Shown: positions 502-12,645, numbered from the whole stretch's first letter. The stretch: DNA of 63,282 nucleotides, filler included, from Octopus bimaculoides (GCF_001194135.2; 5 parts of 4 records of this genome joined end to end with filler, not necessarily neighbours in it); one strand, 5' to 3'. Notes: a model not told the origin generated them from the sequence alone. Program-made: numbers and translations.

Positions 502-655
502 GCGGCTCATATTGTTTCTCACATGATCAAGTACTCACCAAATGACGTCTTCATGGGTTTAACCAGATCACTCGGTGTTGGCCTCTTTAGTCCTGCTGAA
601 GGACCAACTGTTTTCCCCGAAAATTCTAATCTTGCAGATTATCCAGAATGCTACA
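502..655 (+). CDS. Zinc metallopeptidase gene, first visible internal exon (AAHIVSHMIKYSPNDVFMGLTRSLGVGLFSPAEGPTVFPENSNLADYPECY)
   Basis: Acceptor tctttacag at 493-501 (phase 0) and an open frame. A donor A|gttggt after 655 (phase 1) joins in frame to tag|AC at 2652. The start codon and earlier exons are upstream of the window. The donor position is inferred. Confidence 0.65.
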
Positions 656-690
656 GTTGGTATATTTACCATTATGTTTAACTTTTATAA

Positions 691-1080
691 AGGGTGAAAA
701 TTTCAGAGTTGCCCTTGTTTGGCAAGTAATTTGATATGAGAACAAACAGAATTTGATGATTTTATTTAAGCATTTATTTATTTGGTGTCAAAATTTTCGT
801 CGCACTGTCTGCAACCTGGTCACTGAAACCAAGTAATTTATGTTTAGCAAAGGGTGAAAATTTCATAGAGTTCTACTTGTCTGGTAAGTGAATTTATGTG
901 AGAACACACAGGAGCTGTTAACTTCACTTTATTGTTTTGGGCGTCAAAATGCAGGTCGTATTGCCTGCGGCCTCGTTACTGGCACCAAATGATAAACAAT
1001 TAAGTAAATAGTTTCTCTGTGTGCTCTGAATGGCTAAAATGAGCCTTCCACGCTCTAATTACAAAGGGTGAAAATATTTT
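691..1080. repeat. Degenerate tandem repeat of about 160 bp in an intron
   Basis: AAGGGTGAAAAT recurs at about 690, 850 and 1064. The first two copies stay similar for about 140 bp. Confidence 0.55.
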
Positions 1081-1113
1081 CCATAAACTGCTCAATTTTT
1101 ATTTACTTCTGTA

Positions 1114-1318
1114 AAGTGGTGACCTGGCAGAGTTGTTAGCACGCCGGACAAAACGCTTAGCGACATTTCGTCCGTCTTTACGCTATGTGTTTAAATACCA
1201 CCGAGGTCGACTTTGCTTTTCATCTTTTCGGGGTCGATAAAATAAGTACCAGTGATCGATAAAATCGACTTACACCTCTCCTCGAACTTGCTGGTCTTGT
1301 GCCAAAATTTGAAACCAA
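1114..1318 (+). mobile_element. tRNA-derived SINE (family A); further copies near 6905-7105(-), 26733-27113(both strands), 32875-33090(+), 45050-45210(-) and 45750-45890(-)
   Basis: Head ggcagagttgttagcacgccggacaaaacgcttagc and body gaggtcgactttgcttttcatcttttcggggtcgataaaataagtaccag recur across the window. Confidence 0.7.
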
Positions 1319-2122
1319 TATTTATTCACCTCTGTGCTCAACAAAAAATTTTAAAATAGCTCCTGCTTCTTTGAGTAAATCTAATATTGATTTATTAATC
1401 CACTTTTGTTATCCCAAATAATGAATGCAATGATTTGTGTCTGTTAACCAGTCGGCGTTTTAAAACGCTTTCTTGTTTATCCTTGTTATTCTTTTTACAA
1501 AGCAGCCAATACTAGTTTATTTTTAGTCCACAATTCCAAATAATCATTCAGATATGGCTACGNNNNNNNNNNNNNNNNNNNNNNNNNNNNNNNNNNNNNN
1601 NNNNNNNNNNNNNNNNNNNNNNNNNNNNNNNNNNNNNNNNNNNNNNNNNNNNNNNNNNNNNNNNNNNNNNNNNNNNNNNNNNNNNNNNNNNNNNNNNNNN
1701 NNNNNNNNNNNNNNNNNNNNNNNNNNNNNNNNNNNNNNNNNNNNNNNNNNNNNNNNNNNNNNNNNNNNNNNNNNNNNNNNNNNNNNNNNNNNNNNNNNNN
1801 NNNNNNNNNNNNNNNNNNNNNNNNNNNNNNNNNNNNNNNNNNNNNNNNNNNNNNNNNNNNNNNNNNNNNNNNNNNNNNNNNNNNNNNNNNNNNNNNNNNN
1901 NNNNNNNNNNNNNNNNNNNNNNNNNNNNNNNNNNNNNNNNNNNNNNNNNNNNNNNNNNNNNNNNNNNNNNNNNNNNNNNNNNNNNNNNNNNNNNNNNNNN
2001 NNNNNNNNNNNNNNNNNNNNNNNNNNNNNNNNNNNNNNNNNNNNNNNNNNNNNNNNNNNNNNNNNNNNNNNNNNNNNNNNNNNNNNNNNNNNNNNNNNNN
2101 NNNNNNNNNNNNNNNNNNNNNN

Positions 2123-2123
<1 letters not shown>

Positions 2124-2188
<65 letters not shown>
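2124..2188. repeat. (AAT)n microsatellite
   Basis: Perfect AAT run next to a gap. Confidence 0.95.
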
Positions 2189-2191
<3 letters not shown>

Positions 2192-2195
2192 CAAC

Positions 2196-2379
2196 AACAT
2201 CGAAAAATACCTTAGGAATGAGAACCCAGGTTCGAAATTTACTCAAGACACCTGATGAAGGCTGGAGGGTATATCAGTTGAAACGTCGTGTTAACAACAA
2301 ACAAGATAAGGACAAATATCCGTCAAATGTAAATAATGTAAATAGTGTACATAATTCCTCATCTCTTAAATATAGAACT
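2196..2379 (+). mobile_element. Short repeat of about 185 bp carrying a hammerhead motif, probably a Penelope-like element terminus
   Basis: A second copy at 49420-49582 has the same 5' junction (AAT)n-AACATCGAAAAATACCTTAGG and the same 3' end AAATATAGAACT. Confidence 0.65.
2247..2292 (+). ncRNA. Minimal type I hammerhead ribozyme motif (family 1)
   Basis: Stem I GACAC (2247-2251) pairs with GTGTT (2288-2292). Core CTGATGA is at 2252-2258. Stem II GGCTG pairs with CAGTT (two G-U pairs). GAAA is at 2280-2283, followed by a palindromic ACGT and the cleavage triplet GTC (2285-2287). Confidence 0.6.
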
Positions 2380-2651
2380 ATATATATATACAGGCATACC
2401 TTGGCTTGAGTCGTTTCGATTTAAGTCACTCTCGATTATACGCCGGTTTTCAAAAATAATTTATGGAAAAATATAAATCAAGTTACGTCATTTTACTCGA
2501 CTTTACGTCTGTCCGCCACAAATATTAGAATCGTAAAATCACTAGACTTAAACCACAGTAAATTTCTTATATGAAGACACTTTTGTTGACCATGCGTTCG
2601 ATAATGCTTTTGTATTTTCCCTTGTTCATTATTTTATCCTTGTTTTTATAG

Positions 2652-2860
2652 ACAGATGTTCGGGTAAATGTTCAGTCACGTGTACCTTTGACGGCCGGAA
2701 ATGGCAGTCCATTGCTGGGCTGACCAACACCAGGGCTTGTGTTCTTGCTGAAAATGTCATGTGTTCTCCAGGTGATCCATACGGTCATTCAGAAAGCATT
2801 TTGAACCATGAATTCGGACATCTTGTTCATAGATTTATGCCGCAAATGTGGAAAAATAAG
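2652..2860 (+). CDS. Zinc metallopeptidase exon with the HExxH motif (RCSGKCSVTCTFDGRKWQSIAGLTNTRACVLAENVMCSPGDPYGHSESILNHEFGHLVHRFMPQMWKNK)
   Basis: Acceptor tgtttttatag, open frame containing HEFGH, donor AAG|gtaaag at 2861 (phase 0). Confidence 0.9.
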
Positions 2861-3069
2861 GTAAAGAGTTTCAGTTACATAGCATTCGCATAATCTTTAT
2901 GATTGTCATCACCATCATCGTTGTCACTATCACAGGCGTTTCAGTTAGTTCGATATTCCCTCTTACTGGCGCTCTACTGCGTTTCCCTAAGCAGCAGTGA
3001 CACTATACGTGCAACTTATATGACCGGGACCAAATGAAGAGTTACGTTTTGCTGGATTTGCTTATATCA

Positions 3070-3128
<59 letters not shown>
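3070..3128. repeat. (CA)n microsatellite
   Basis: Perfect CA run. Confidence 0.95.
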
Positions 3129-3131
<3 letters not shown>

Positions 3132-3917
3132 ATTCATTCATTCATACATACATATATACATATACATACGTACAGAAATATATATTTTTATACATGTATA
3201 TCAATTAAAATCAAGGATAATATATANNNNNNNNNNNNNNNNNNNNNNNNNNNNNNNNNNNNNNNNNNNNNNNNNNNNNNNNNNNNNNNNNNNNNNNNNN
3301 NNNNNNNNNNNNNNNNNNNNNNNNNNNNNNNNNNNNNNNNNNNNNNNNNNNNNNNNNNNNNNNNNNNNNNNNNNNNNNNNNNNNNNNNNNNNNNNNNNNN
3401 NNNNNNNNNNNNNNNNNNNNNNNNNNNNNNNNNNNNNNNNNNNNNNNNNNNNNNNNNNNNNNNNNNNNNNNNNNNNNNNNNNNNNNNNNNNNNNNNNNNN
3501 NNNNNNNNNNNNNNNNNNNNNNNNNNNNNNNNNNNNNNNNNNNNNNNNNNNNNNNNNNNNNNNNNNNNNNNNNCAGCAAAGGTACGGCAGTATTTACGGT
3601 ACATACAATGGTTACAACAACGCTTTTTCCATCACCAACAATTTGTGCAACTCCCTGTCGAATGTGATGGGGTCACAAAGAAGATCAAAATGGGAAATGA
3701 CAGCTACGTGCATATAACGAAAGTACCTGAGCTTAAAATTGGCGGAAGGCGTCCTTGCATTCCAAATCCAGGCCTGAAGGAAGCTCACTGCCACATTCAA
3801 GTATTCTAAGCAGAAACACTCCAGGTTACCTCTGTCCTCTTTATGCATAAATATAGAAGACATTTTGTTATTTTTAGTAGCCTAATTTCTAATTCAACAT
3901 ATTTTTTTTCCGTACAG

Positions 3918-4066
3918 ATTGGGGCTGCTTACAGAAATGCCTATAATAGACAACTGTGGACCCTCGGTACTTATGCTATGGCGAATGCCCATGAATACTT
4001 TGCAGAAGCAACAGAAGCATTTTTCTTAGACTCCAAAAGGACGGACGTAACAGGCGGTATGAATAT
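3918..4066 (+). CDS. Zinc metallopeptidase exon with the third zinc ligand (IGAAYRNAYNRQLWTLGTYAMANAHEYFAEATEAFFLDSKRTDVTGGMN)
   Basis: Acceptor ttttttttccgtacag (phase 0), motif Y-x6-EYFAE, perfect donor AT|gtaagt at 4067 (phase 2). Confidence 0.9.
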
Positions 4067-4259
4067 GTAAGTAACAAATGGTTCTGCAAATCTGTCTGCT
4101 TGTCTCTTGTTTTACGCCACTCGCTGTTTAAATTTGCTTGTCTTTCTGTGTCTGTCTAATTATCCGCTTCTCCCTCTCGACTGTCCTGTAAGATTGTTTC
4201 ATCGCTTCAAAAAATGAGATTTCAGCGAGACACAGCTGAATAGTGTACTTCCTTTGTGT

Positions 4260-4335
4260 ACTGTCCGTCTGTCTGTCTGTCTGTCCGTCCGTCTGTCTGT
4301 CTGTCTGTCTGTCCGTCTGTCCGTCTATCTATCTA

Positions 4336-4392
<57 letters not shown>

Positions 4393-4546
4393 CCAGCTGT
4401 CCGTCCGTCTGTCCGTCTGTCCGTCTGTCCGTCTGTCCGTCTGTCCGCCTGTCCGTTCATTTTTTCTGCCTGTCTGTCCGACCGTCCGTCTACCTACGTG
4501 TCTACCTGCGGCGGTGGCGGCAACGACGACGACGACGACGACGACT
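4260..4546. repeat. (CTGT/CCGT)n tetranucleotide array followed by (GAC)n
   Basis: Seen directly; explains the spurious ORFs at 4243-4618. Confidence 0.9.
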
Positions 4547-4591
4547 AAAATCTTCCCTTGTCTGTTAAAACTCTATCTTCTCTGTTATCAG

Positions 4592-4739
4592 GTGCGGTAC
4601 CAACAGAGTGTGTCCTAATGAGAAAAGCGCACGGGAATACCTCAAGAGACATGATCCAGCACTCTACGAAACCTTGGTTTACGCTTATACAGATGGAAGG
4701 CCAAACATGGCCATGGGACTGAAAATATGTGTTGATTAA
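4592..4739 (+). CDS. Zinc metallopeptidase terminal exon (MCGTNRVCPNEKSAREYLKRHDPALYETLVYAYTDGRPNMAMGLKICVD*)
   Basis: Acceptor ctctgttatcag. AT+G completes Met. The R..LK..DP.LY..L motif is typical of this family. Stop TAA at 4737-4739, with a possible polyA signal ATTAAA at 4757-4762. The four exons total 660 nt, i.e. 219 aa plus stop. Confidence 0.88.

Positions 4740-4841: not shown

Positions 4842-4844
<3 letters not shown>

Positions 4845-4904
<60 letters not shown>
4845..4904. repeat. (CTAT)n microsatellite
   Basis: Perfect run. Confidence 0.95.
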
Positions 4905-4905
<1 letters not shown>

Positions 4906-5191
4906 GGATGTCCACAATTTAAAATAGTCAGCTACACAGATCACAAGTTTGTGACGTGTACGCTCGACTTAGATAAGACACATAGGCAGGGTCCCGGTTA
5001 CTGGAAACTGAACGCTTCGCTCTTAGCGCGGCAGGTTTACAGGAACCGGATTAGCGAATTAATTAAGAGGGCGTTAACAGGAGCCATCGTTAACAACCGC
5101 TGGTGGTTTGCCCTGAAAATGGCAATCAAATCGGAATCTATTAGGTTTAGTAAAGAACTAGCGATAGATCGAAATAGAGTAGAGGGAGACT
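4905..5191 (+). mobile_element. Tx1/L1-type LINE ORF2 fragment (end of the APE endonuclease domain)
   Basis: Translates as GCPQFKIVSYTDHKFVTCTLDLDKTHRQGPGYWKLNASLLARQVYRNRISELI. SDH and G.GYWKLN.SLL are hallmark Tx1/L1 motifs. Truncated by a gap. Confidence 0.85.
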
Positions 5192-6818: not shown

Positions 6819-7206
6819 TCTTATTCATTATATATTCTGTAACTATCACTTGCTCTCGGACTGCAGAATGTGACAGACCAAGAGAGTCTGACCTTTTTGT
6901 AAATATTGATTTCAAATTTTGGCAGAAGGCCAGCAAGTTTTCGTGGAGGGGGCTAAGACGATTAAATCTGCCCCAGCATTCAACTGGCAGTCGTGTTATC
7001 GACCTCAAAAAGATGAAAGGCGATGTCGACCTCGGTGGAATTTGAACTCAGAACGTAAAGACGGACGAAATGTTGCTAGGCATTTTTCTCGGCGTACTAA
7101 ATATTCTATCAGCTCGTCACCTTAGCCTTTCTATAAATATTAACATCATCCACAGGTTTTCGGCATAAATCTACCCAAGTATAACTACCCAGTGTTTCTC
7201 TCCCAG

Positions 7207-7308
7207 GTCAGAAGTACCGTGGAAATTCGCCGAATATCGAGTACATTCCGAGGAGTTCACGATCGGAGTTCACTACCGGACATCTTCAGATTTGAACACT
7301 TGGATAAG
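7207..7308 (+). CDS. Candidate 102-bp exon (phase 0: VRSTVEIRRISSTFRGVHDRSSLPDIFRFEHLDK), possibly upstream in gene 2
   Basis: Acceptor tgtttctctcccag and donor AAG|gtatta. Two frames are open and the sequence is CpG-rich. Phase 0 would join the 13987 exon, but a scaffold-join gap lies between them. Confidence 0.35.
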
Positions 7309-10300
7309 GTATTATTTAGGAGATGATGTTTAAATGATACCATCCAACTCTTAAAGTCTGTCTGCACAGATCTTAAAAATCCTACCCACTCTTCTCTTCT
7401 TAAAAAGTTAAAGTATATATGTGTGTGTATGTATGTATGTATGTATCTATGTATGTATGTAGGAATGTATGTGTGTAGGAATGTATGTTTGTACGTCAGT
7501 ATGTATGTGTTTGTATATATGTGGGCTATGTATATGTAAATAGGTGAGTTTGTATGTTTCCATAACAGACGCAAAACTTGGTTTTTAATTATGCAAATTA
7601 CCTCATAAAATATCTTGTACTGTTTACTTCGATAAATCTACTTTCTCGCAATCCATCTCTCCCGCTCCCCTTCTCGCTCTCCTTCTCTCACTCTTTCTCT
7701 GTATGTACGCATACATATATACATACTGTATATTCATATATATATATATATATATATNNNNNNNNNNNNNNNNNNNNNNNNNNNNNNNNNNNNNNNNNNN
7801 NNNNNNNNNNNNNNNNNNNNNNNNNNNNNNNNNNNNNNNNNNNNNNNNNNNNNNNNNNNNNNNNNNNNNNNNNNNNNNNNNNNNNNNNNNNNNNNNNNNN
7901 NNNNNNNNNNNNNNNNNNNNNNNNNNNNNNNNNNNNNNNNNNNNNNNNNNNNNNNNNNNNNNNNNNNNNNNNNNNNNNNNNNNNNNNNNNNNNNNNNNNN
8001 NNNNNNNNNNNNNNNNNNNNNNNNNNNNNNNNNNNNNNNNNNNNNNNNNNNNNNATACATATATATATATATTTACATATATATATATACATATATATAT
8101 ACACACACATATATATATATATACACATATATACATATATGTACGTACACACACAAAGACGCAGGAATACACACAAACTCACATGTATACACGGAGAGTG
8201 TGTGTGTGTGTGTGTGTGTGTGAACGGGCGCGTACGTGTGTGCACACGCGTGCGAGTACGTAGGTAAAGATTCTCTGTCACAACACCAATTTTTCCGCTC
8301 TTTGGTCATGGAAGCCATATATTTTCCTATTTTACTGTGATTAATGTTTGTCTCTGTCTATCTCTCTACTCTTCTGTCTATGTATCTGTCAATCTATCCC
8401 TCCTCTCCTCACCCTCTCTCTCTGTATATATATGTATGTGTATATATATATATATATATATGTTCTTTATATATATTATTTATATATTATGTATGTATGT
8501 ATGTATGAATGTATGTATGTATGCATGTATGTATATGTTAAGGCATTGAACATCTACAACCCTTGGTCTTTGGATAGTACGTCATTTATGCGACTGACTA
8601 CCTAGCTGTCATAGTTCGACATCTTGATCAGGGCTGACCCACGGCTAAATAAATATGATGACAGCAATACCAATGACTACAACAACAATATCAATGATAA
8701 CACCAACATAAATAGTGGTAAAGAACAGCCTACTGAAGACGTAGGTTTCTCGTGTCGCTTGACCTGTTAAGAATAAAAAACCAAATCTCTTTCAAATTAC
8801 ACTGTATGGTCTTAGAAAAACGGGCGCATGGAGCGGTGTATATTTAGATATAAGATGTGATAGCGACGAATGGAATTTATTCGATCGTAGGTTTAAATGA
8901 TCAGAATTGATCTGGGACCAAGCTGACGAAGGGCTAAGCGGCAGCAAACACCAACAACACCACTATCGCTACAGACATCACCACCATCACCACGACCACC
9001 ATCAATGCCGTCATCACCAACAATAAAACATGATCTAACGAGGGATCTTGTGCGTGGTCACTCGATTTGCTTGATATAGCCGCCAAATCGCCCTCAATTC
9101 AGTACTTATTGGCTTATAAAAGAACACGCTGGATACTGTGGTTTTGGATTCCCAGAATATTTTTCATCTTTTAATTGTTTCAGTCATTTGACTGCGGCCA
9201 TGTTGGGGCATGAACCGAAATGCTTTAATTAAACAAATCGACTCTAATGCACATTGTTAAGGTTTCGCACAGTGTGACTGAAGCCGAGACCACATACTGG
9301 CAATGCGAGCTTCTTAACTACATAGCTATGGCTGCGTGTACAGAGCGATGAGAAATATAAAAGATGACCATAGTTGGAGTACCTTTCATTATAGGTGTGC
9401 TGGATCAAGTTTGACCTGTGGCTAACCAACAACTTCAACAACATTATAGACACAAACACTGGCAGCACCAGCACCACCATCCACACCATCACCATGACAC
9501 CGTCAGCTTCATCACCATTAACACCAACAGCAGCAGCAGCAGTAACACAAACTCCATCATCAACAGCACCAGCAAAAACATTACAAACTATACCACCCCG
9601 AAACACTACCGATCCCACCACCACCATCAAAACAACAGCAGCACCAACACTATCACAATCAGCATCAACATCAACATCAACAACGTTACAACACCAATAT
9701 CAACAACAACAACTCCAACAACACCGCCACCACCGCCAACAACACTAAAAACATAAGGAGGGCCCACTAACACCGACATCGCCACCAACATCAATAGTAC
9801 TAGCAACACTACTTCCACCACCAGCAGCACTAACGCCACCACCAACGACTCCACTGCCACCACCCAGCCACCACCACCACCACCACCACGAGAGTACCAT
9901 ATCAAAATCGATCAATTATCCAATCAGATACAATTTCCCTGATTTTATATTTGTTTAATTACATCAAAAATTCTTTTTATTCTCATCAAGTGAAATGGCG
10001 GGAAAACAAGGCAAAAATAAACATCGATTATCTCTCTTGTGTCGGACCAACGAAATGGCGCGTAAAACTTAGGTGGGGTGGGAGTGGGGATGCGGTGATA
10101 TGGAGGGTGATGTGACAAGATGGCCAATGTGTTTTGATATTTTACTTGCCTTTGGTGGNNNNNNNNNNNNNNNNNNNNNNNNNNNNNNNNNNNNNNNNNN
10201 NNNNNNNNNNNNNNNNNNNNNNNNNNNNNNNNNNNNNNNNNNNNNNNNNNNNNNNNNNNNNNNNNNNNNNNNNNNNNNNNNNNNNNNNNNNNNNNNNNNN

Positions 10301-10981
10301 NNNNNNNNNNNNNNNNNNNNNNNNNNNNNNNNNNNGCTGCTGCTGCTGGTGCTGGTGCTGGTGCTGGTGGTGGTGGTGGTGGCGGTGGTTGTGGTGGTTT
10401 TGGTGGTAGTGGAGGTGTTGGTGGTGTTGGTGGTAGTGGTGGTGGTGCACACATATGCAATTGGTACCCAGACACACATTACCTCATATAAATATATGCA
10501 CATACAAACATTGATGAAGAGCGTATGTACAGATGTGTGTTTAAGACATTGGCGCACCCCTACGTGCTTCCAGTTTCAATTCTATAGGGTAACACTCTGG
10601 AAAAGAGTCAACTAGCATAGCCTAAGGTCGACTTAATTCTTCTAAGCGAAATTTCGAAGAGAGAAATCGTACGGAAGATCGATAGCAGGACAGCTCTAGC
10701 TTTAAATTTGTAGAAGTCTTAATTCTAGCTCCACATGGATAGCATTAGCAAAGTTTGATCTGTTACGAGAAATCATTCCAATCAGTTCTTCGGTTTGAGG
10801 AAAAGCCCGTTTTCTCCTCTTCTAATCTCACACATCCAATAGGAAAACAGTATTTAATAGAAAACTTTATGTCTTCTGTGTTGGTTTCCAGAAACCCCAA
10901 ATCAACAGGGAGATAATTGCTCAACATTCGATATAAAACAGTAGGAAAGTGTCTATTAAATAGGAATAAATTATGTAAGTG

Positions 10982-10983
<2 letters not shown>

Positions 10984-11053
<70 letters not shown>
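10984..11053. repeat. (AAT)n microsatellite
   Basis: Perfect run. Confidence 0.95.
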
Positions 11054-11055
<2 letters not shown>

Positions 11056-11299
11056 TACAATTAGGTTATTGTTTTATTGGCTTCTGAAGGTTCTTTAACA
11101 ATTAATTTAGGCTGGTTAATGATAATAGGTAAATAATTTACCGGAGGATTATTCTATCAAAGAGATTTTAGAACACCTCGGATGAGTATGTGCATTTGTG
11201 TGTGTGTGTATGTACTTATAATATATATGTACATACATACATATACGCACACCTACAATACACATATGCACACACTAACACGCGCAAACACACACACAC

Positions 11300-11338
<39 letters not shown>

Positions 11339-11804
11339 GAGAGACACGAAAGAGAGAGAGAGAGAGCGGTTATGTGTATGTATAAATGCCTTCCTATATG
11401 TGTGAACGTATATGTTTATGTATACATATTTGTGCATATATGTATATGCGAGCGTTTTGGGGATGTGCGCAAAGAAACAATACAATATTATTAAAAGAGA
11501 AAAATACTAAAGATTGATTAGCTTCTGTTATTGTTTTAAGACGGATGATGTTAATTACTCAAAGATTAACTTGGCAAATGATTAAGTTATAGCAGATTAG
11601 ATTTTAGTTATGAATGGCAAAGACAAACACTTGGTATCATATCAGGTTAAACAATTTAAGGATTCAACAATATGACTGGGAAGAACAGGGTATTTAAATA
11701 ATAATATGAACACCATATCCTGCAAAATCAGTGCTTTATCTATAGTGGTTACTTGGAAAGATACGGATTCTAAAATAATACAAGAATTTATTAAATGAAT
11801 AAGA

Positions 11805-11975
11805 TATGGCTGTGCGGTTAAGAAGCTTGCTTCACAACCATATTGTCTTGAGTTCAATCCCACTGAGAGGCACCATGGAAAAGTATCTTCAACTATAGCC
11901 CCGGGCCGACCGATGCCTTGTGAGCGATCCCTTTTCAGTGAATTGATTAGACAGAAACTGAAAGAAGCCCGCCGT
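11805..11975 (-). mobile_element. Short interspersed repeat (family C); copies near 21575-21735(+), 21905-22055(-), 26430-26580(+), 34000-34095(+), 35330-35475(+) and 48295-48400(-)
   Basis: Shared gggcttctttcagtttccgtctaccaaatccactcacaaggctttgg...gaagacacttgcccaaggtgcc...ggaagcaagcttcttaccacacagcc. Confidence 0.7.
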
Positions 11976-11982
11976 GTATATG

Positions 11983-12042
<60 letters not shown>

Positions 12043-12043
12043 G

Positions 12044-12645
12044 TGTGCGCTGGGTAAATTGTCACAACTTTATATTTTTTATTTCGCGCATGCGCAATCA
12101 TTGTTTCTGATTTTGTCCACTACACAGTATAGTAGGGTCAGTTGGGCACCGTCTGTGAGAAAAACACCACCATGATGCAATTCTCTCTGTCAGAAATTTG
12201 GAAACGACATGCCGTACTTCTTGGCATTCGCGCCGGAAGCTCCAATACGAACATTTCAGAGTGTTTGGGTATCAATCTGAGGACAGTGCAAGCTCAGGGC
12301 ATGTACTGAGAATTGATAAAACTCGAACAAGCAATCAACGTCATGGTGTTTGGAGTGATCACTAGTGATGGCAACGTCATGCTTCCATTCATTTTCCCAC
12401 ACGGCCGCAGACTCAACATGAAGGCCTACATTAAGTGCCCGGAGAAGATAGTGCTACCTGGGTCAAGAGGGTGGCTGCTGGAAGACCCTATGTCTGGCAA
12501 CAGGACTCTGCACCATGTCACACAAGCAAGAGAACCCAGTCGTGGCTGTCAGACAATTCCTGCGACCACATCACTTCTAGAATCTGGCCACCTAACTCCC
12601 ACACTGCAACCCCCTTGATTATTATGTGTGGGGCGCCGTTGAGCT
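12044..12645 (+). mobile_element. Internally deleted Tc1/mariner transposon, DD37D (maT-like) transposase remnant
   Basis: Frameshifted VMVFGVITSDGNVMLPFIFPHG...WVKRVAAGRPYVWQQDSAPCHTSKRTQSWLSDNSCDHITSRIWPPNS../NPLDYYVWGAVE. There are 37 residues between the last two catalytic Asp after correcting one frameshift. Confidence 0.8.

Follow-up and report, generated by a model that had tools for sequence, protein, structure and literature searches.

Within a window of 63,282 nucleotides of Octopus bimaculoides DNA (GCF_001194135.2; the window is the whole stretch analysed, i.e. five parts of four records joined end to end with filler), positions 502 to 4739 hold a gene that is intact, canonically spliced and under purifying selection. 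These positions comprise exons 4 to 7 of a seven-exon orthologue of the O. sinensis gene LOC115211140. The best overall explanation, which we hold to be likely, is that these four exons belong to a mollusc-wide gene of plausible bacterial ancestry, which encodes a cysteine-rich, probably secreted zinc protease of the ATLF-like type, i.e. related to the anthrax lethal factor (LF).

A split gene and its Octopus sinensis orthologue

After splicing, the four exons form a 660-nt coding sequence, translated into 219 amino acids followed by a stop codon. Every exon is preceded by AG and followed by GT (at 500-501 and 656-657, respectively, for exon 4), and the last one closes with the TAA codon at 4737-4739. 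The donor of the third of these exons reads AT/gtaagt (the slash marks the exon boundary), with the exon end at 4066, one base before the naive reading. The spliced product carries HEFGH at residues 104-108, then Tyr140 and Glu147 (the latter in EYFAE) at +32 and +39 from the second histidine of HEFGH, and nine cysteines, among them those of CYNRCSGKCSVTC and CGTNRVC. All of these elements, the split into four exons and the 219-residue length included, had been noticed in a first-pass annotation made from the sequence alone, and all were found. The agreement between the splicing, the motif and the orthologue match described below is far beyond chance.

The product aligns without gaps to residues 79-297 of the 297-amino-acid protein encoded by O. 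sinensis LOC115211140 (P0001; E=4e-147, 96% identity, 100% coverage). Using an exon mapper, we found that the O. sinensis gene comprises seven coding exons of 40, 55, 139, 154, 209, 149 and 148 nt spread over 22 kb. The last four (25018-25171, 28726-28934, 30208-30356 and 32127-32274 of the locus L081) have the same boundaries and splice dinucleotides as the exons of the window. Because about 4.5 kb separate exon 4 from the preceding exon 3 in O. sinensis, and only 501 bases of the piece precede exon 4, exons 1-3 (78 residues) are located off the piece. In the orthologue, this N-terminal part of 78 residues is made up of a signal-like MERVFLFTVGLLASVQA and of two beta-strands. The coding sequences of the two species are 96.2% identical, with 0.118 synonymous (dS) and 0.019 nonsynonymous (dN) substitutions per site, and the resulting dN/dS ratio of 0.16, together with the intact frame, indicates that the gene is under purifying selection.

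The piece contains two runs of N (1563-2122 and 3227-3573), and continuity across them had been set as the first test of the gene model. Both gaps are intronic and hide nothing coding, since all the exons of the orthologue map outside the gap intervals: no exon of the 297-amino-acid protein occurs in the matching O. sinensis intervals, about 26454-27984 for gap 1 and about 29081-29694 for gap 2. The window segments 2548-3008 and 3574-3762 align to 28622-29080 and 29695-29882 of L081, and the protein alignment runs without gaps over both gap-spanning junctions (ECY/N/RCSG and WKNK/IGAAY). The size of gap 1 may be underestimated (about 620 bp in the window versus about 1530 bp in O. sinensis).

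These two gaps, the 5' exons missing from the piece and the mostly bacterial membership of the family could be taken as signs of a bacterial contaminant, or of a dead pseudogene fragment in a gappy assembly. We regard this alternative as hardly credible. The introns are of the GT-AG type, and they contain animal repeats and microsatellites. The O. sinensis locus, which is part of a 165-Mb chromosome, is colinear with the window over L081 24918-32414, with introns 86-95% identical between the two species, and the exon structure is kept in three mollusc classes, as exemplified by a limpet and a chiton. Contamination and pseudogene were both rejected on the intact frame, the dN/dS value and the chromosome colinearity, and the earlier claim of a real split animal gene was thereby upheld.

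Family placement, predicted fold and catalytic residues

Pfam matched the 219-residue fragment to ATLF (PF07737; 24.8 bits, E 2e-5) and M90 (PF06167; 19.8 bits) and to no other family, and the aligned relatives matched the same two families (13 of 19 for ATLF, 8 of 19 for M90); the NCBIfam scan of the product returned no family. Two bacterial relatives, P0035 and P0021, which match the family profile at 3e-82 and 2e-119, score respectively 42 and 41 bits against ATLF, i.e. above its curated cut-off. Searching the PDB sequences with the family profile yielded only LF and two Pro-Pro endopeptidases (PPEPs), PPEP-3 (9g0j) and PPEP-2 (6fpc), and in each of these matches the HExxH motif, the tyrosine and the glutamate of ..E[YF]FAE.. 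are aligned. LF is the only significant match (mixed profile, E 4.5e-4), the E-values of the PPEPs ranging from 0.01 to 1; phmmer with the fragment alone found nothing meaningful in the PDB (best E=1). The entry 9g0j corresponds to PPEP-3, for which the roles of the His/Glu/His residues, Tyr190 and Glu197 have been described (PMC12828418). In our alignments, the five corresponding residues (H, E, H, Y, E) are invariant in 19-21 mollusc and bacterial sequences.

The structure model, like the exhaustive profile search presented further below, was made with the full-length orthologue P0001 (96% identical), not with the window product. AlphaFold2, run on a 19-sequence alignment, gave a mean predicted local distance difference test (pLDDT) of 81.5 and a predicted template modelling score (pTM) of 0.79. 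The predicted fold consists of an N-terminal alpha/beta subdomain with an edge strand and a helical C-terminal subdomain, HEFGH being located within a predicted helix (residues 179-191 of the orthologue). Foldseek comparison with the PDB ranked first PPEP-2 (E 1e-4, template modelling (TM) score of 0.59-0.62 by target), then PPEP-1, then LF (E 0.15), with noise below. The first 16 matches consist entirely of PPEP-2 and PPEP-1/Zmp1 entries (probability 1.00, E 1e-4 to 5e-3, TM 0.57-0.64 by target).

From these data, we assign the protein to the ATLF-like (MEROPS M34-type) gluzincins. The first-pass annotation had named the anthrax lethal factor/PPEP superfamily, a placement that holds at the superfamily level, as Pfam points only to ATLF and M90, the PDB sequences only to LF and the PPEPs, and the fold to the PPEPs and then to LF. 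The structure prediction recommended at that time found no metzincin, consistent with the claim that the protein is not an astacin, MMP, ADAM or M13 protease. The automatic names given to these genes in databases are inconsistent ('uncharacterized protein', ATLF, M12B, lysine-specific metallo-endopeptidase). Two of them, 'Peptidase M12B domain-containing' and 'Lysine-specific metallo-endopeptidase domain-containing', are all that speaks for an ordinary metzincin (astacin, MMP, ADAM) or an M35 aspzincin, which we regard as extremely unlikely, given that the glutamate of EYFAE, aligned to E735 of LF, is the predicted third ligand. The metzincins were rejected on the absence of HExxHxxGxxH, of any astacin, M10 or reprolysin match in Pfam at E<=10 and of any metzincin among the fold and PDB matches. 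The M35 aspzincins were rejected for want of the GTxDxxYG motif and of a Pfam M35 match at E<=10.

The best structural matches are PPEP-1 (Zmp1, from Clostridioides difficile), PPEP-2 (Paenibacillus alvei) and PPEP-3 (Geobacillus), which belong to MEROPS M34 (EC 3.4.24.89). The window product shares with PPEP-1 the identical +32 Tyr/+39 Glu spacing (Y178/E185 in PPEP-1) and the aligned EYFAE motif, and with the PPEPs in general the HExxH on an active-site helix, the alpha/beta N-terminal and helical C-terminal subdomains, and a secreted nature, predicted in the case of the mollusc proteins. In PPEPs, the S-loop (Lys/Arg, Trp/Tyr) and a diverting loop enforce the cleavage between two prolines. 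The PPEPs lack disulfides. In the mollusc proteins, by contrast, a Cys-rich insert of about 45 residues lies where the PPEPs have the S-loop, and the C-terminal part has an extra Cys-containing loop. The insert lies in the region preceding the edge strand, where model confidence is low, and the comparison with the S-loop is made at the level of regions. As the identity in the fold alignments is only 12-18% and the Cys-rich insert falls at the S-loop region, the protein is not a PPEP proper. According to PMC8610288, PPEP domains are confined to Firmicutes of two orders, the Clostridiales and the Bacillales, whereas the window gene is molluscan.

Three other comparisons help to delineate the family. 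First, HEFGH, Y728 and E735 of LF align to HEFGH, Y140 and E147 of the window product, and the top Pfam family is that of LF; the stretch following HExxH is about five residues longer in LF, with a Tyr-to-Glu distance of 7 in both proteins, and LF is a 776-amino-acid four-domain toxin delivered by the protective antigen. Nothing in the window product points to MAPKK cleavage or toxin delivery. Second, the ATLF-like proteins of Verrucomicrobiota and Planctomycetota (such as P0019, P0035 and P0040) are the nearest non-animal relatives, with 30-39% identity. They share W/D..R..G, EENV...GDPY..E.IL.HEF.H, LW...Y...N..EYFAE and R..L...DP.L with the mollusc proteins, in keeping with the likeness to standalone bacterial members first noticed through such motifs, but they have no introns, conserved disulfide set or Cys-rich insert; some of them score above the ATLF cut-off, and they are uncharacterised. 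Third, M90/MtfA, a cytoplasmic bacterial aminopeptidase, gives a weak match (E 6.7e-4) running from the HExxH helix to the Glu-ligand helix, which covers only about 50 residues (48), lies below the 26.2-bit cut-off and has no counterpart among the fold matches.

The mollusc proteins also possess a cysteine set of their own. Among 44 clade members, eight cysteines (C128, C132, C136, C140, C167, C250, C256 and C295 of the orthologue) show 90-100% conservation, and the bacterial relatives do not have this set; the ninth (C159 of the orthologue, C81 of the window product) is not conserved. As, in addition, every full-length paralogue displays a hydrophobic signal-like N-terminus, the protein is probably secreted and stabilised by four disulfides. 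This supports, indirectly, the earlier suggestion of a secreted disulfide-bonded enzyme. The insert follows the pattern PE..N.LAD..C...C.G.C..TCTFDGRK, of which the Asp and Arg (D65 and R67 in the window product) do not vary, the bacterial sequences included.

By homology with the PPEPs and LF, we propose that the protein acts as a secreted monomeric zinc endopeptidase, in which His104, His108 and Glu147 (His182, His186 and Glu225 of the full-length protein) would bind Zn2+, Glu105 (E183) would serve as the general base activating the water molecule, and Tyr140 (Y218) would stabilise the tetrahedral intermediate/oxyanion. The substrate would adopt the form of an extended strand and pair in antiparallel fashion with RACVL, the predicted edge strand (residues 157-161 in the orthologue). 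The eight conserved cysteines probably form four disulfides that staple the mollusc-specific insert (CxxxCxxxCxxxC and the invariant D..R), which would be placed where PPEPs carry their specificity-determining S-loop. The insert is thus an obvious candidate determinant of substrate specificity, and, as it occupies the place of the S-loop, the model leads us to expect a specificity other than Pro-Pro cleavage.

An alternative is that the product is a catalytically inactive binding protein. The catalytic motif is indeed lost in two relatives described below, an amphioxus protein with ZP and TSP1 domains (P0097) and a Solemya protein (P0134). However, HExxH, the tyrosine and the glutamate are intact in the window gene and 90-100% conserved in its clade, and the dN/dS value given above also argues for a functional enzyme, which makes a pseudoprotease improbable.

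To our knowledge, the biochemistry of the lethal-factor/PPEP superfamily rests entirely on a handful of Firmicutes enzymes. Our literature searches (gene and locus identifiers, ATLF with mollusc, M34 with metazoa and horizontal transfer, database names) found no paper on this family in animals. The novelty of the present proteins lies in an intron-bearing, predicted disulfide-stapled animal branch of the ATLF-like gluzincins in which the specificity loop appears to be replaced, and which may offer a new specificity to discover in a family prized for unusual specificities. These proteins are candidate secreted effectors in cephalopod and bivalve biology, for instance in feeding, mucus, immunity or matrix remodelling. 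They are also an example of how unannotated enzyme families can go unnoticed in gappy assemblies when their genes are split.

Distribution in animals and possible origin

The exhaustive profile search covered 1.84 billion cluster representatives (clusters at 50% identity) and yielded 4121 matches at E<=1e-3, including 553 at E<=1e-30. Names were looked up for 30 of the best matches, only a sample of the matches carrying taxon names. With the exception of one amphioxus protein, the named best matches are all from molluscs: Mytilus, Haliotis, Aplysia, Ostrea, Patella, Nucella, Babylonia, Solemya and the chiton Liolophura. With a profile of the mollusc clade, the named matches are only molluscs down to 1e-83, followed by bacterial-type proteins after a drop to 1e-35. 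The mollusc matches contain at least four octopus paralogues, located on different chromosomes or scaffolds. In Lottia gigantea, the paralogues P0008 and P0007 are tandem neighbours (6832-9374 and 10001-12322 of locus L082) with an identical exon structure, which points to local duplication.

In neighbour-joining trees (Kimura distances, 200-205 columns, 50 replicates), which are indicative only, the named molluscs and unnamed Cys-rich proteins of about 300 amino acids form a single clade of 52 of the 166 tips. On sequence grounds, we place the window gene in this Cys-rich clade, which encompasses cephalopods, gastropods, bivalves and a chiton. The exons of the catalytic region have the same sizes (154, 209, 149 and 145-151 nt) and phases (0, 1, 0 and 2) in octopus, in the two Lottia paralogues and in the chiton Liolophura, the 154-nt exon included, which indicates that these introns predate the split of the molluscan classes. 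One member of the clade, P0134 from Solemya velum, has TAFAE in place of HExxH and no Tyr/Glu pair, and is, judging from its sequence, a probable pseudoenzyme.

A search with the amphioxus domain revealed a second, broader animal subfamily, hereafter type B, often associated with a ShKT domain (P0246-P0354; e.g. at the loci L084 of Asterias, L085 of Littorina and L086 of Branchiostoma). This subfamily was found in Branchiostoma, five genera of echinoderms, a coral (Porites), an annelid (Ridgeia), a sea spider (Pycnogonum) and many molluscs, and the view that the family is restricted to molluscs was dropped accordingly. Like the window clade, type B belongs to the ATLF-like superfamily, keeps the catalytic motifs in most members and consists of intron-bearing genes of marine invertebrates, the products of which are predicted to be secreted. 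Unlike the window clade, it has no CxxxCxxxCxxxC insert, its introns occupy other positions, none of those in the catalytic domain being common to both groups, and it stands much nearer to bacterial sequences. Compared with the amphioxus query, its members show 40-57% identity, the same range as bacterial PKD-domain proteins, with which they are interleaved by score. The type B genes of starfish, periwinkle and amphioxus have one phase-1 intron in common, directly after the domain, and in Asterias the whole domain is encoded by a single 819-nt exon. A joint neighbour-joining tree recovers the window clade (52 tips) and type B (51 tips) as two distinct clades, between which bacterial sequences are placed.

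The amphioxus protein P0097 (Branchiostoma belcheri, 1451 amino acids) contains two near-identical ATLF-like domains with HGFAQ for HEFAH and Phe for Tyr, embedded in a membrane protein with Ig, ShK, TSP1, fn3 and ZP domains. From its sequence, it looks like a pseudoprotease recruited into a matrix protein.

The closest bacterial relatives were found at 80 loci (L001-L080), nearly all of them from metagenome-assembled or other genomes of Verrucomicrobiota and Planctomycetota. The nearest of these proteins are only about 30% identical to the window product. Fusions to VHL-beta, PKD or DPP-IV/S9 domains are frequent among the bacterial relatives, as are tandem repeats. Their architectures vary (P0040, P0021, P0228 and P0233, for instance): one is a C-terminal fusion to DPP-IV and S9 prolyl oligopeptidase, others have an N-terminal VHL-beta domain (PF01847), PKD domains, or the domain in two to three tandem copies. 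The association with a post-proline dipeptidase may be a hint of substrates that contain proline. A survey of polymorphic toxins reported ALF-metallopeptidase toxin domains only in bacteria (PMC3482391).

A bacterial origin of the gene is plausible, because by far the most members of the family are bacterial, animals have it in a patchy pattern, and the named sample of profile-search matches includes none from fungi, plants, vertebrates, insects or nematodes; more than one event is possible. The mollusc clade would most likely derive from a bacterial gene acquired before the divergence of the molluscan classes, which then gained introns, a signal peptide and disulfides. The first-pass annotation had proposed an ancient transfer followed by domestication: the antiquity in molluscs is borne out by the common introns, and the second animal subfamily points to a history more complex than one transfer. 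If transfer did occur, several events, or a far older one, were probably involved. A more speculative reading, which we hold to be less likely than not, has at least two bacterial transfers into animals; the mollusc one, before the radiation of Mollusca, would have been followed by the gain of six introns, a signal peptide and four disulfides, a Cys-knot-like replacement of the specificity loop, an expansion to several paralogues per genome and a new specificity. In that case, the substrates could be, for example, extracellular matrix, mucus, prey or pathogen proteins.

Alternatively, an ATLF-like gene was present in early animals, and the mollusc clade is a fast-evolving type B paralogue that required no separate transfer. 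This vertical origin, which we judge rather unlikely, draws on the presence of related domains in Cnidaria (Porites), echinoderms, amphioxus, an annelid, a sea spider and molluscs, on the phase-1 intron of starfish, periwinkle and amphioxus, which suggests that type B is old in animals, and on the proneness of neighbour-joining trees to long-branch artefacts. The following lines of evidence speak for the other side. First, the window clade and type B have no common intron position in the catalytic domain. Second, the joint tree keeps the two animal clades apart, with bacteria between them. Third, bacterial PKD-domain proteins are as near to the amphioxus query as type B proteins are. Fourth, the window product shows low identity to its nearest bacterial relatives. 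Fifth, the fungi, plants, vertebrates, insects and nematodes are missing from the named matches.

Several points count against the explanation of the window gene as a mollusc-wide ATLF-like secreted protease of bacterial ancestry. The ATLF scores of the fragment and of the full-length orthologue (26.7 bits for the latter) are slightly under the curated gathering cut-off of 27.4 bits. The structural likeness to the PPEPs is moderate (TM about 0.4 by query and about 0.6 by target, root-mean-square deviation of 5-6 A, with the low identity mentioned above), and the Cys-rich insert is the part of the model with the lowest confidence (pLDDT 50-77). The exact 52-tip clade received a bootstrap of only 19/50 in crude neighbour-joining trees. 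As P0134 and P0097 have lost the catalytic residues, not every member of the family is an enzyme, and the protease activity and secretion of the octopus protein are themselves read from sequence. Finally, type B spans several phyla, which leaves room for vertical descent with heavy loss or divergence.

Together, these data describe a conserved, selected, multi-copy animal branch in all the major classes of molluscs, and another one that extends across phyla of marine invertebrates. If the proposed ancestry is correct, the animal branches would offer a clean case of the domestication of a bacterial-type secreted protease through intron gain, disulfide stapling and loop replacement.

Feature coordinates and surrounding repeats

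Coordinates of the exons and introns of the O. bimaculoides gene in the window. The exons are numbered after the seven-exon O. sinensis orthologue.
Feature	Position	Strand	Length	Content
Coding exon 4/7	502..655	+	154 nt	Encodes AAHIVSHMIK...ADYPECY; phase 0 start, end after the first base of codon 52
Intron 4	656..2651	+		Assembly gap 1 (1563-2122); interspersed repeat (1114-1326); (TAA)22 (2123-2188)
Coding exon 5/7	2652..2860	+	209 nt	CxxxCxxxCxxxC insert with invariant D..R; predicted edge strand; active-site helix with HEFGH (nt 2807-2821)
Intron 5	2861..3917	+		(CA)29 (3071-3129); assembly gap 2 (3227-3573)
Coding exon 6/7	3918..4066	+	149 nt	Tyr140 (3972-3974), predicted oxyanion-stabilising Tyr; Glu147 (3993-3995) in EYFAE, predicted third zinc ligand
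Intron 6	4067..4591	+		Long imperfect (CTGT/CCGT)n array (4261-4453)
Coding exon 7/7	4592..4739	+	148 nt, TAA included	CGTNRVC; R..L..HDP.LY; C-terminal conserved Cys

Both flanks of the four exons carry transposon-like sequences. On the minus strand of positions 60-400, the translation (..KWKWIGSTIRKD..VLQWNPDGYRKRSRQKNSWR..) is similar to the C-terminal tail of the open reading frame 2 of retrotransposons without long terminal repeats. The O. sinensis locus offers no colinear counterpart for the segment 1-401, and this segment may thus be a lineage-specific insertion. On the plus strand, past the gene, an open frame at 4915-5191, which runs off the piece, resembles the end of the apurinic/apyrimidinic endonuclease (APE)-type domain of long interspersed nuclear elements (LINEs; SYTDHKFVTCTL..GPGYWKLNASLL). 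Pfam gave no match for either flanking translation, the LINE label being based on motif resemblance only.

Intron 4 contains interspersed repeats at 1114-1326 and 2138-2383. The former has a look of short interspersed nuclear element, and it is present in at least ten copies, in both orientations and with 72-83% identity, within 42 kb of L081; it matched no tRNA or Rfam family, and the Rfam and tRNA scans overall returned nothing credible. As to the microsatellites, the (TAA)22 array abuts gap 1, the (CA)29 array ends about 100 bases before gap 2, the imperfect array of intron 6 extends over 190 bp, and a (TCTA)16 array is located past the stop codon (4842-4905). Such microsatellite repeats probably caused the assembly gaps.

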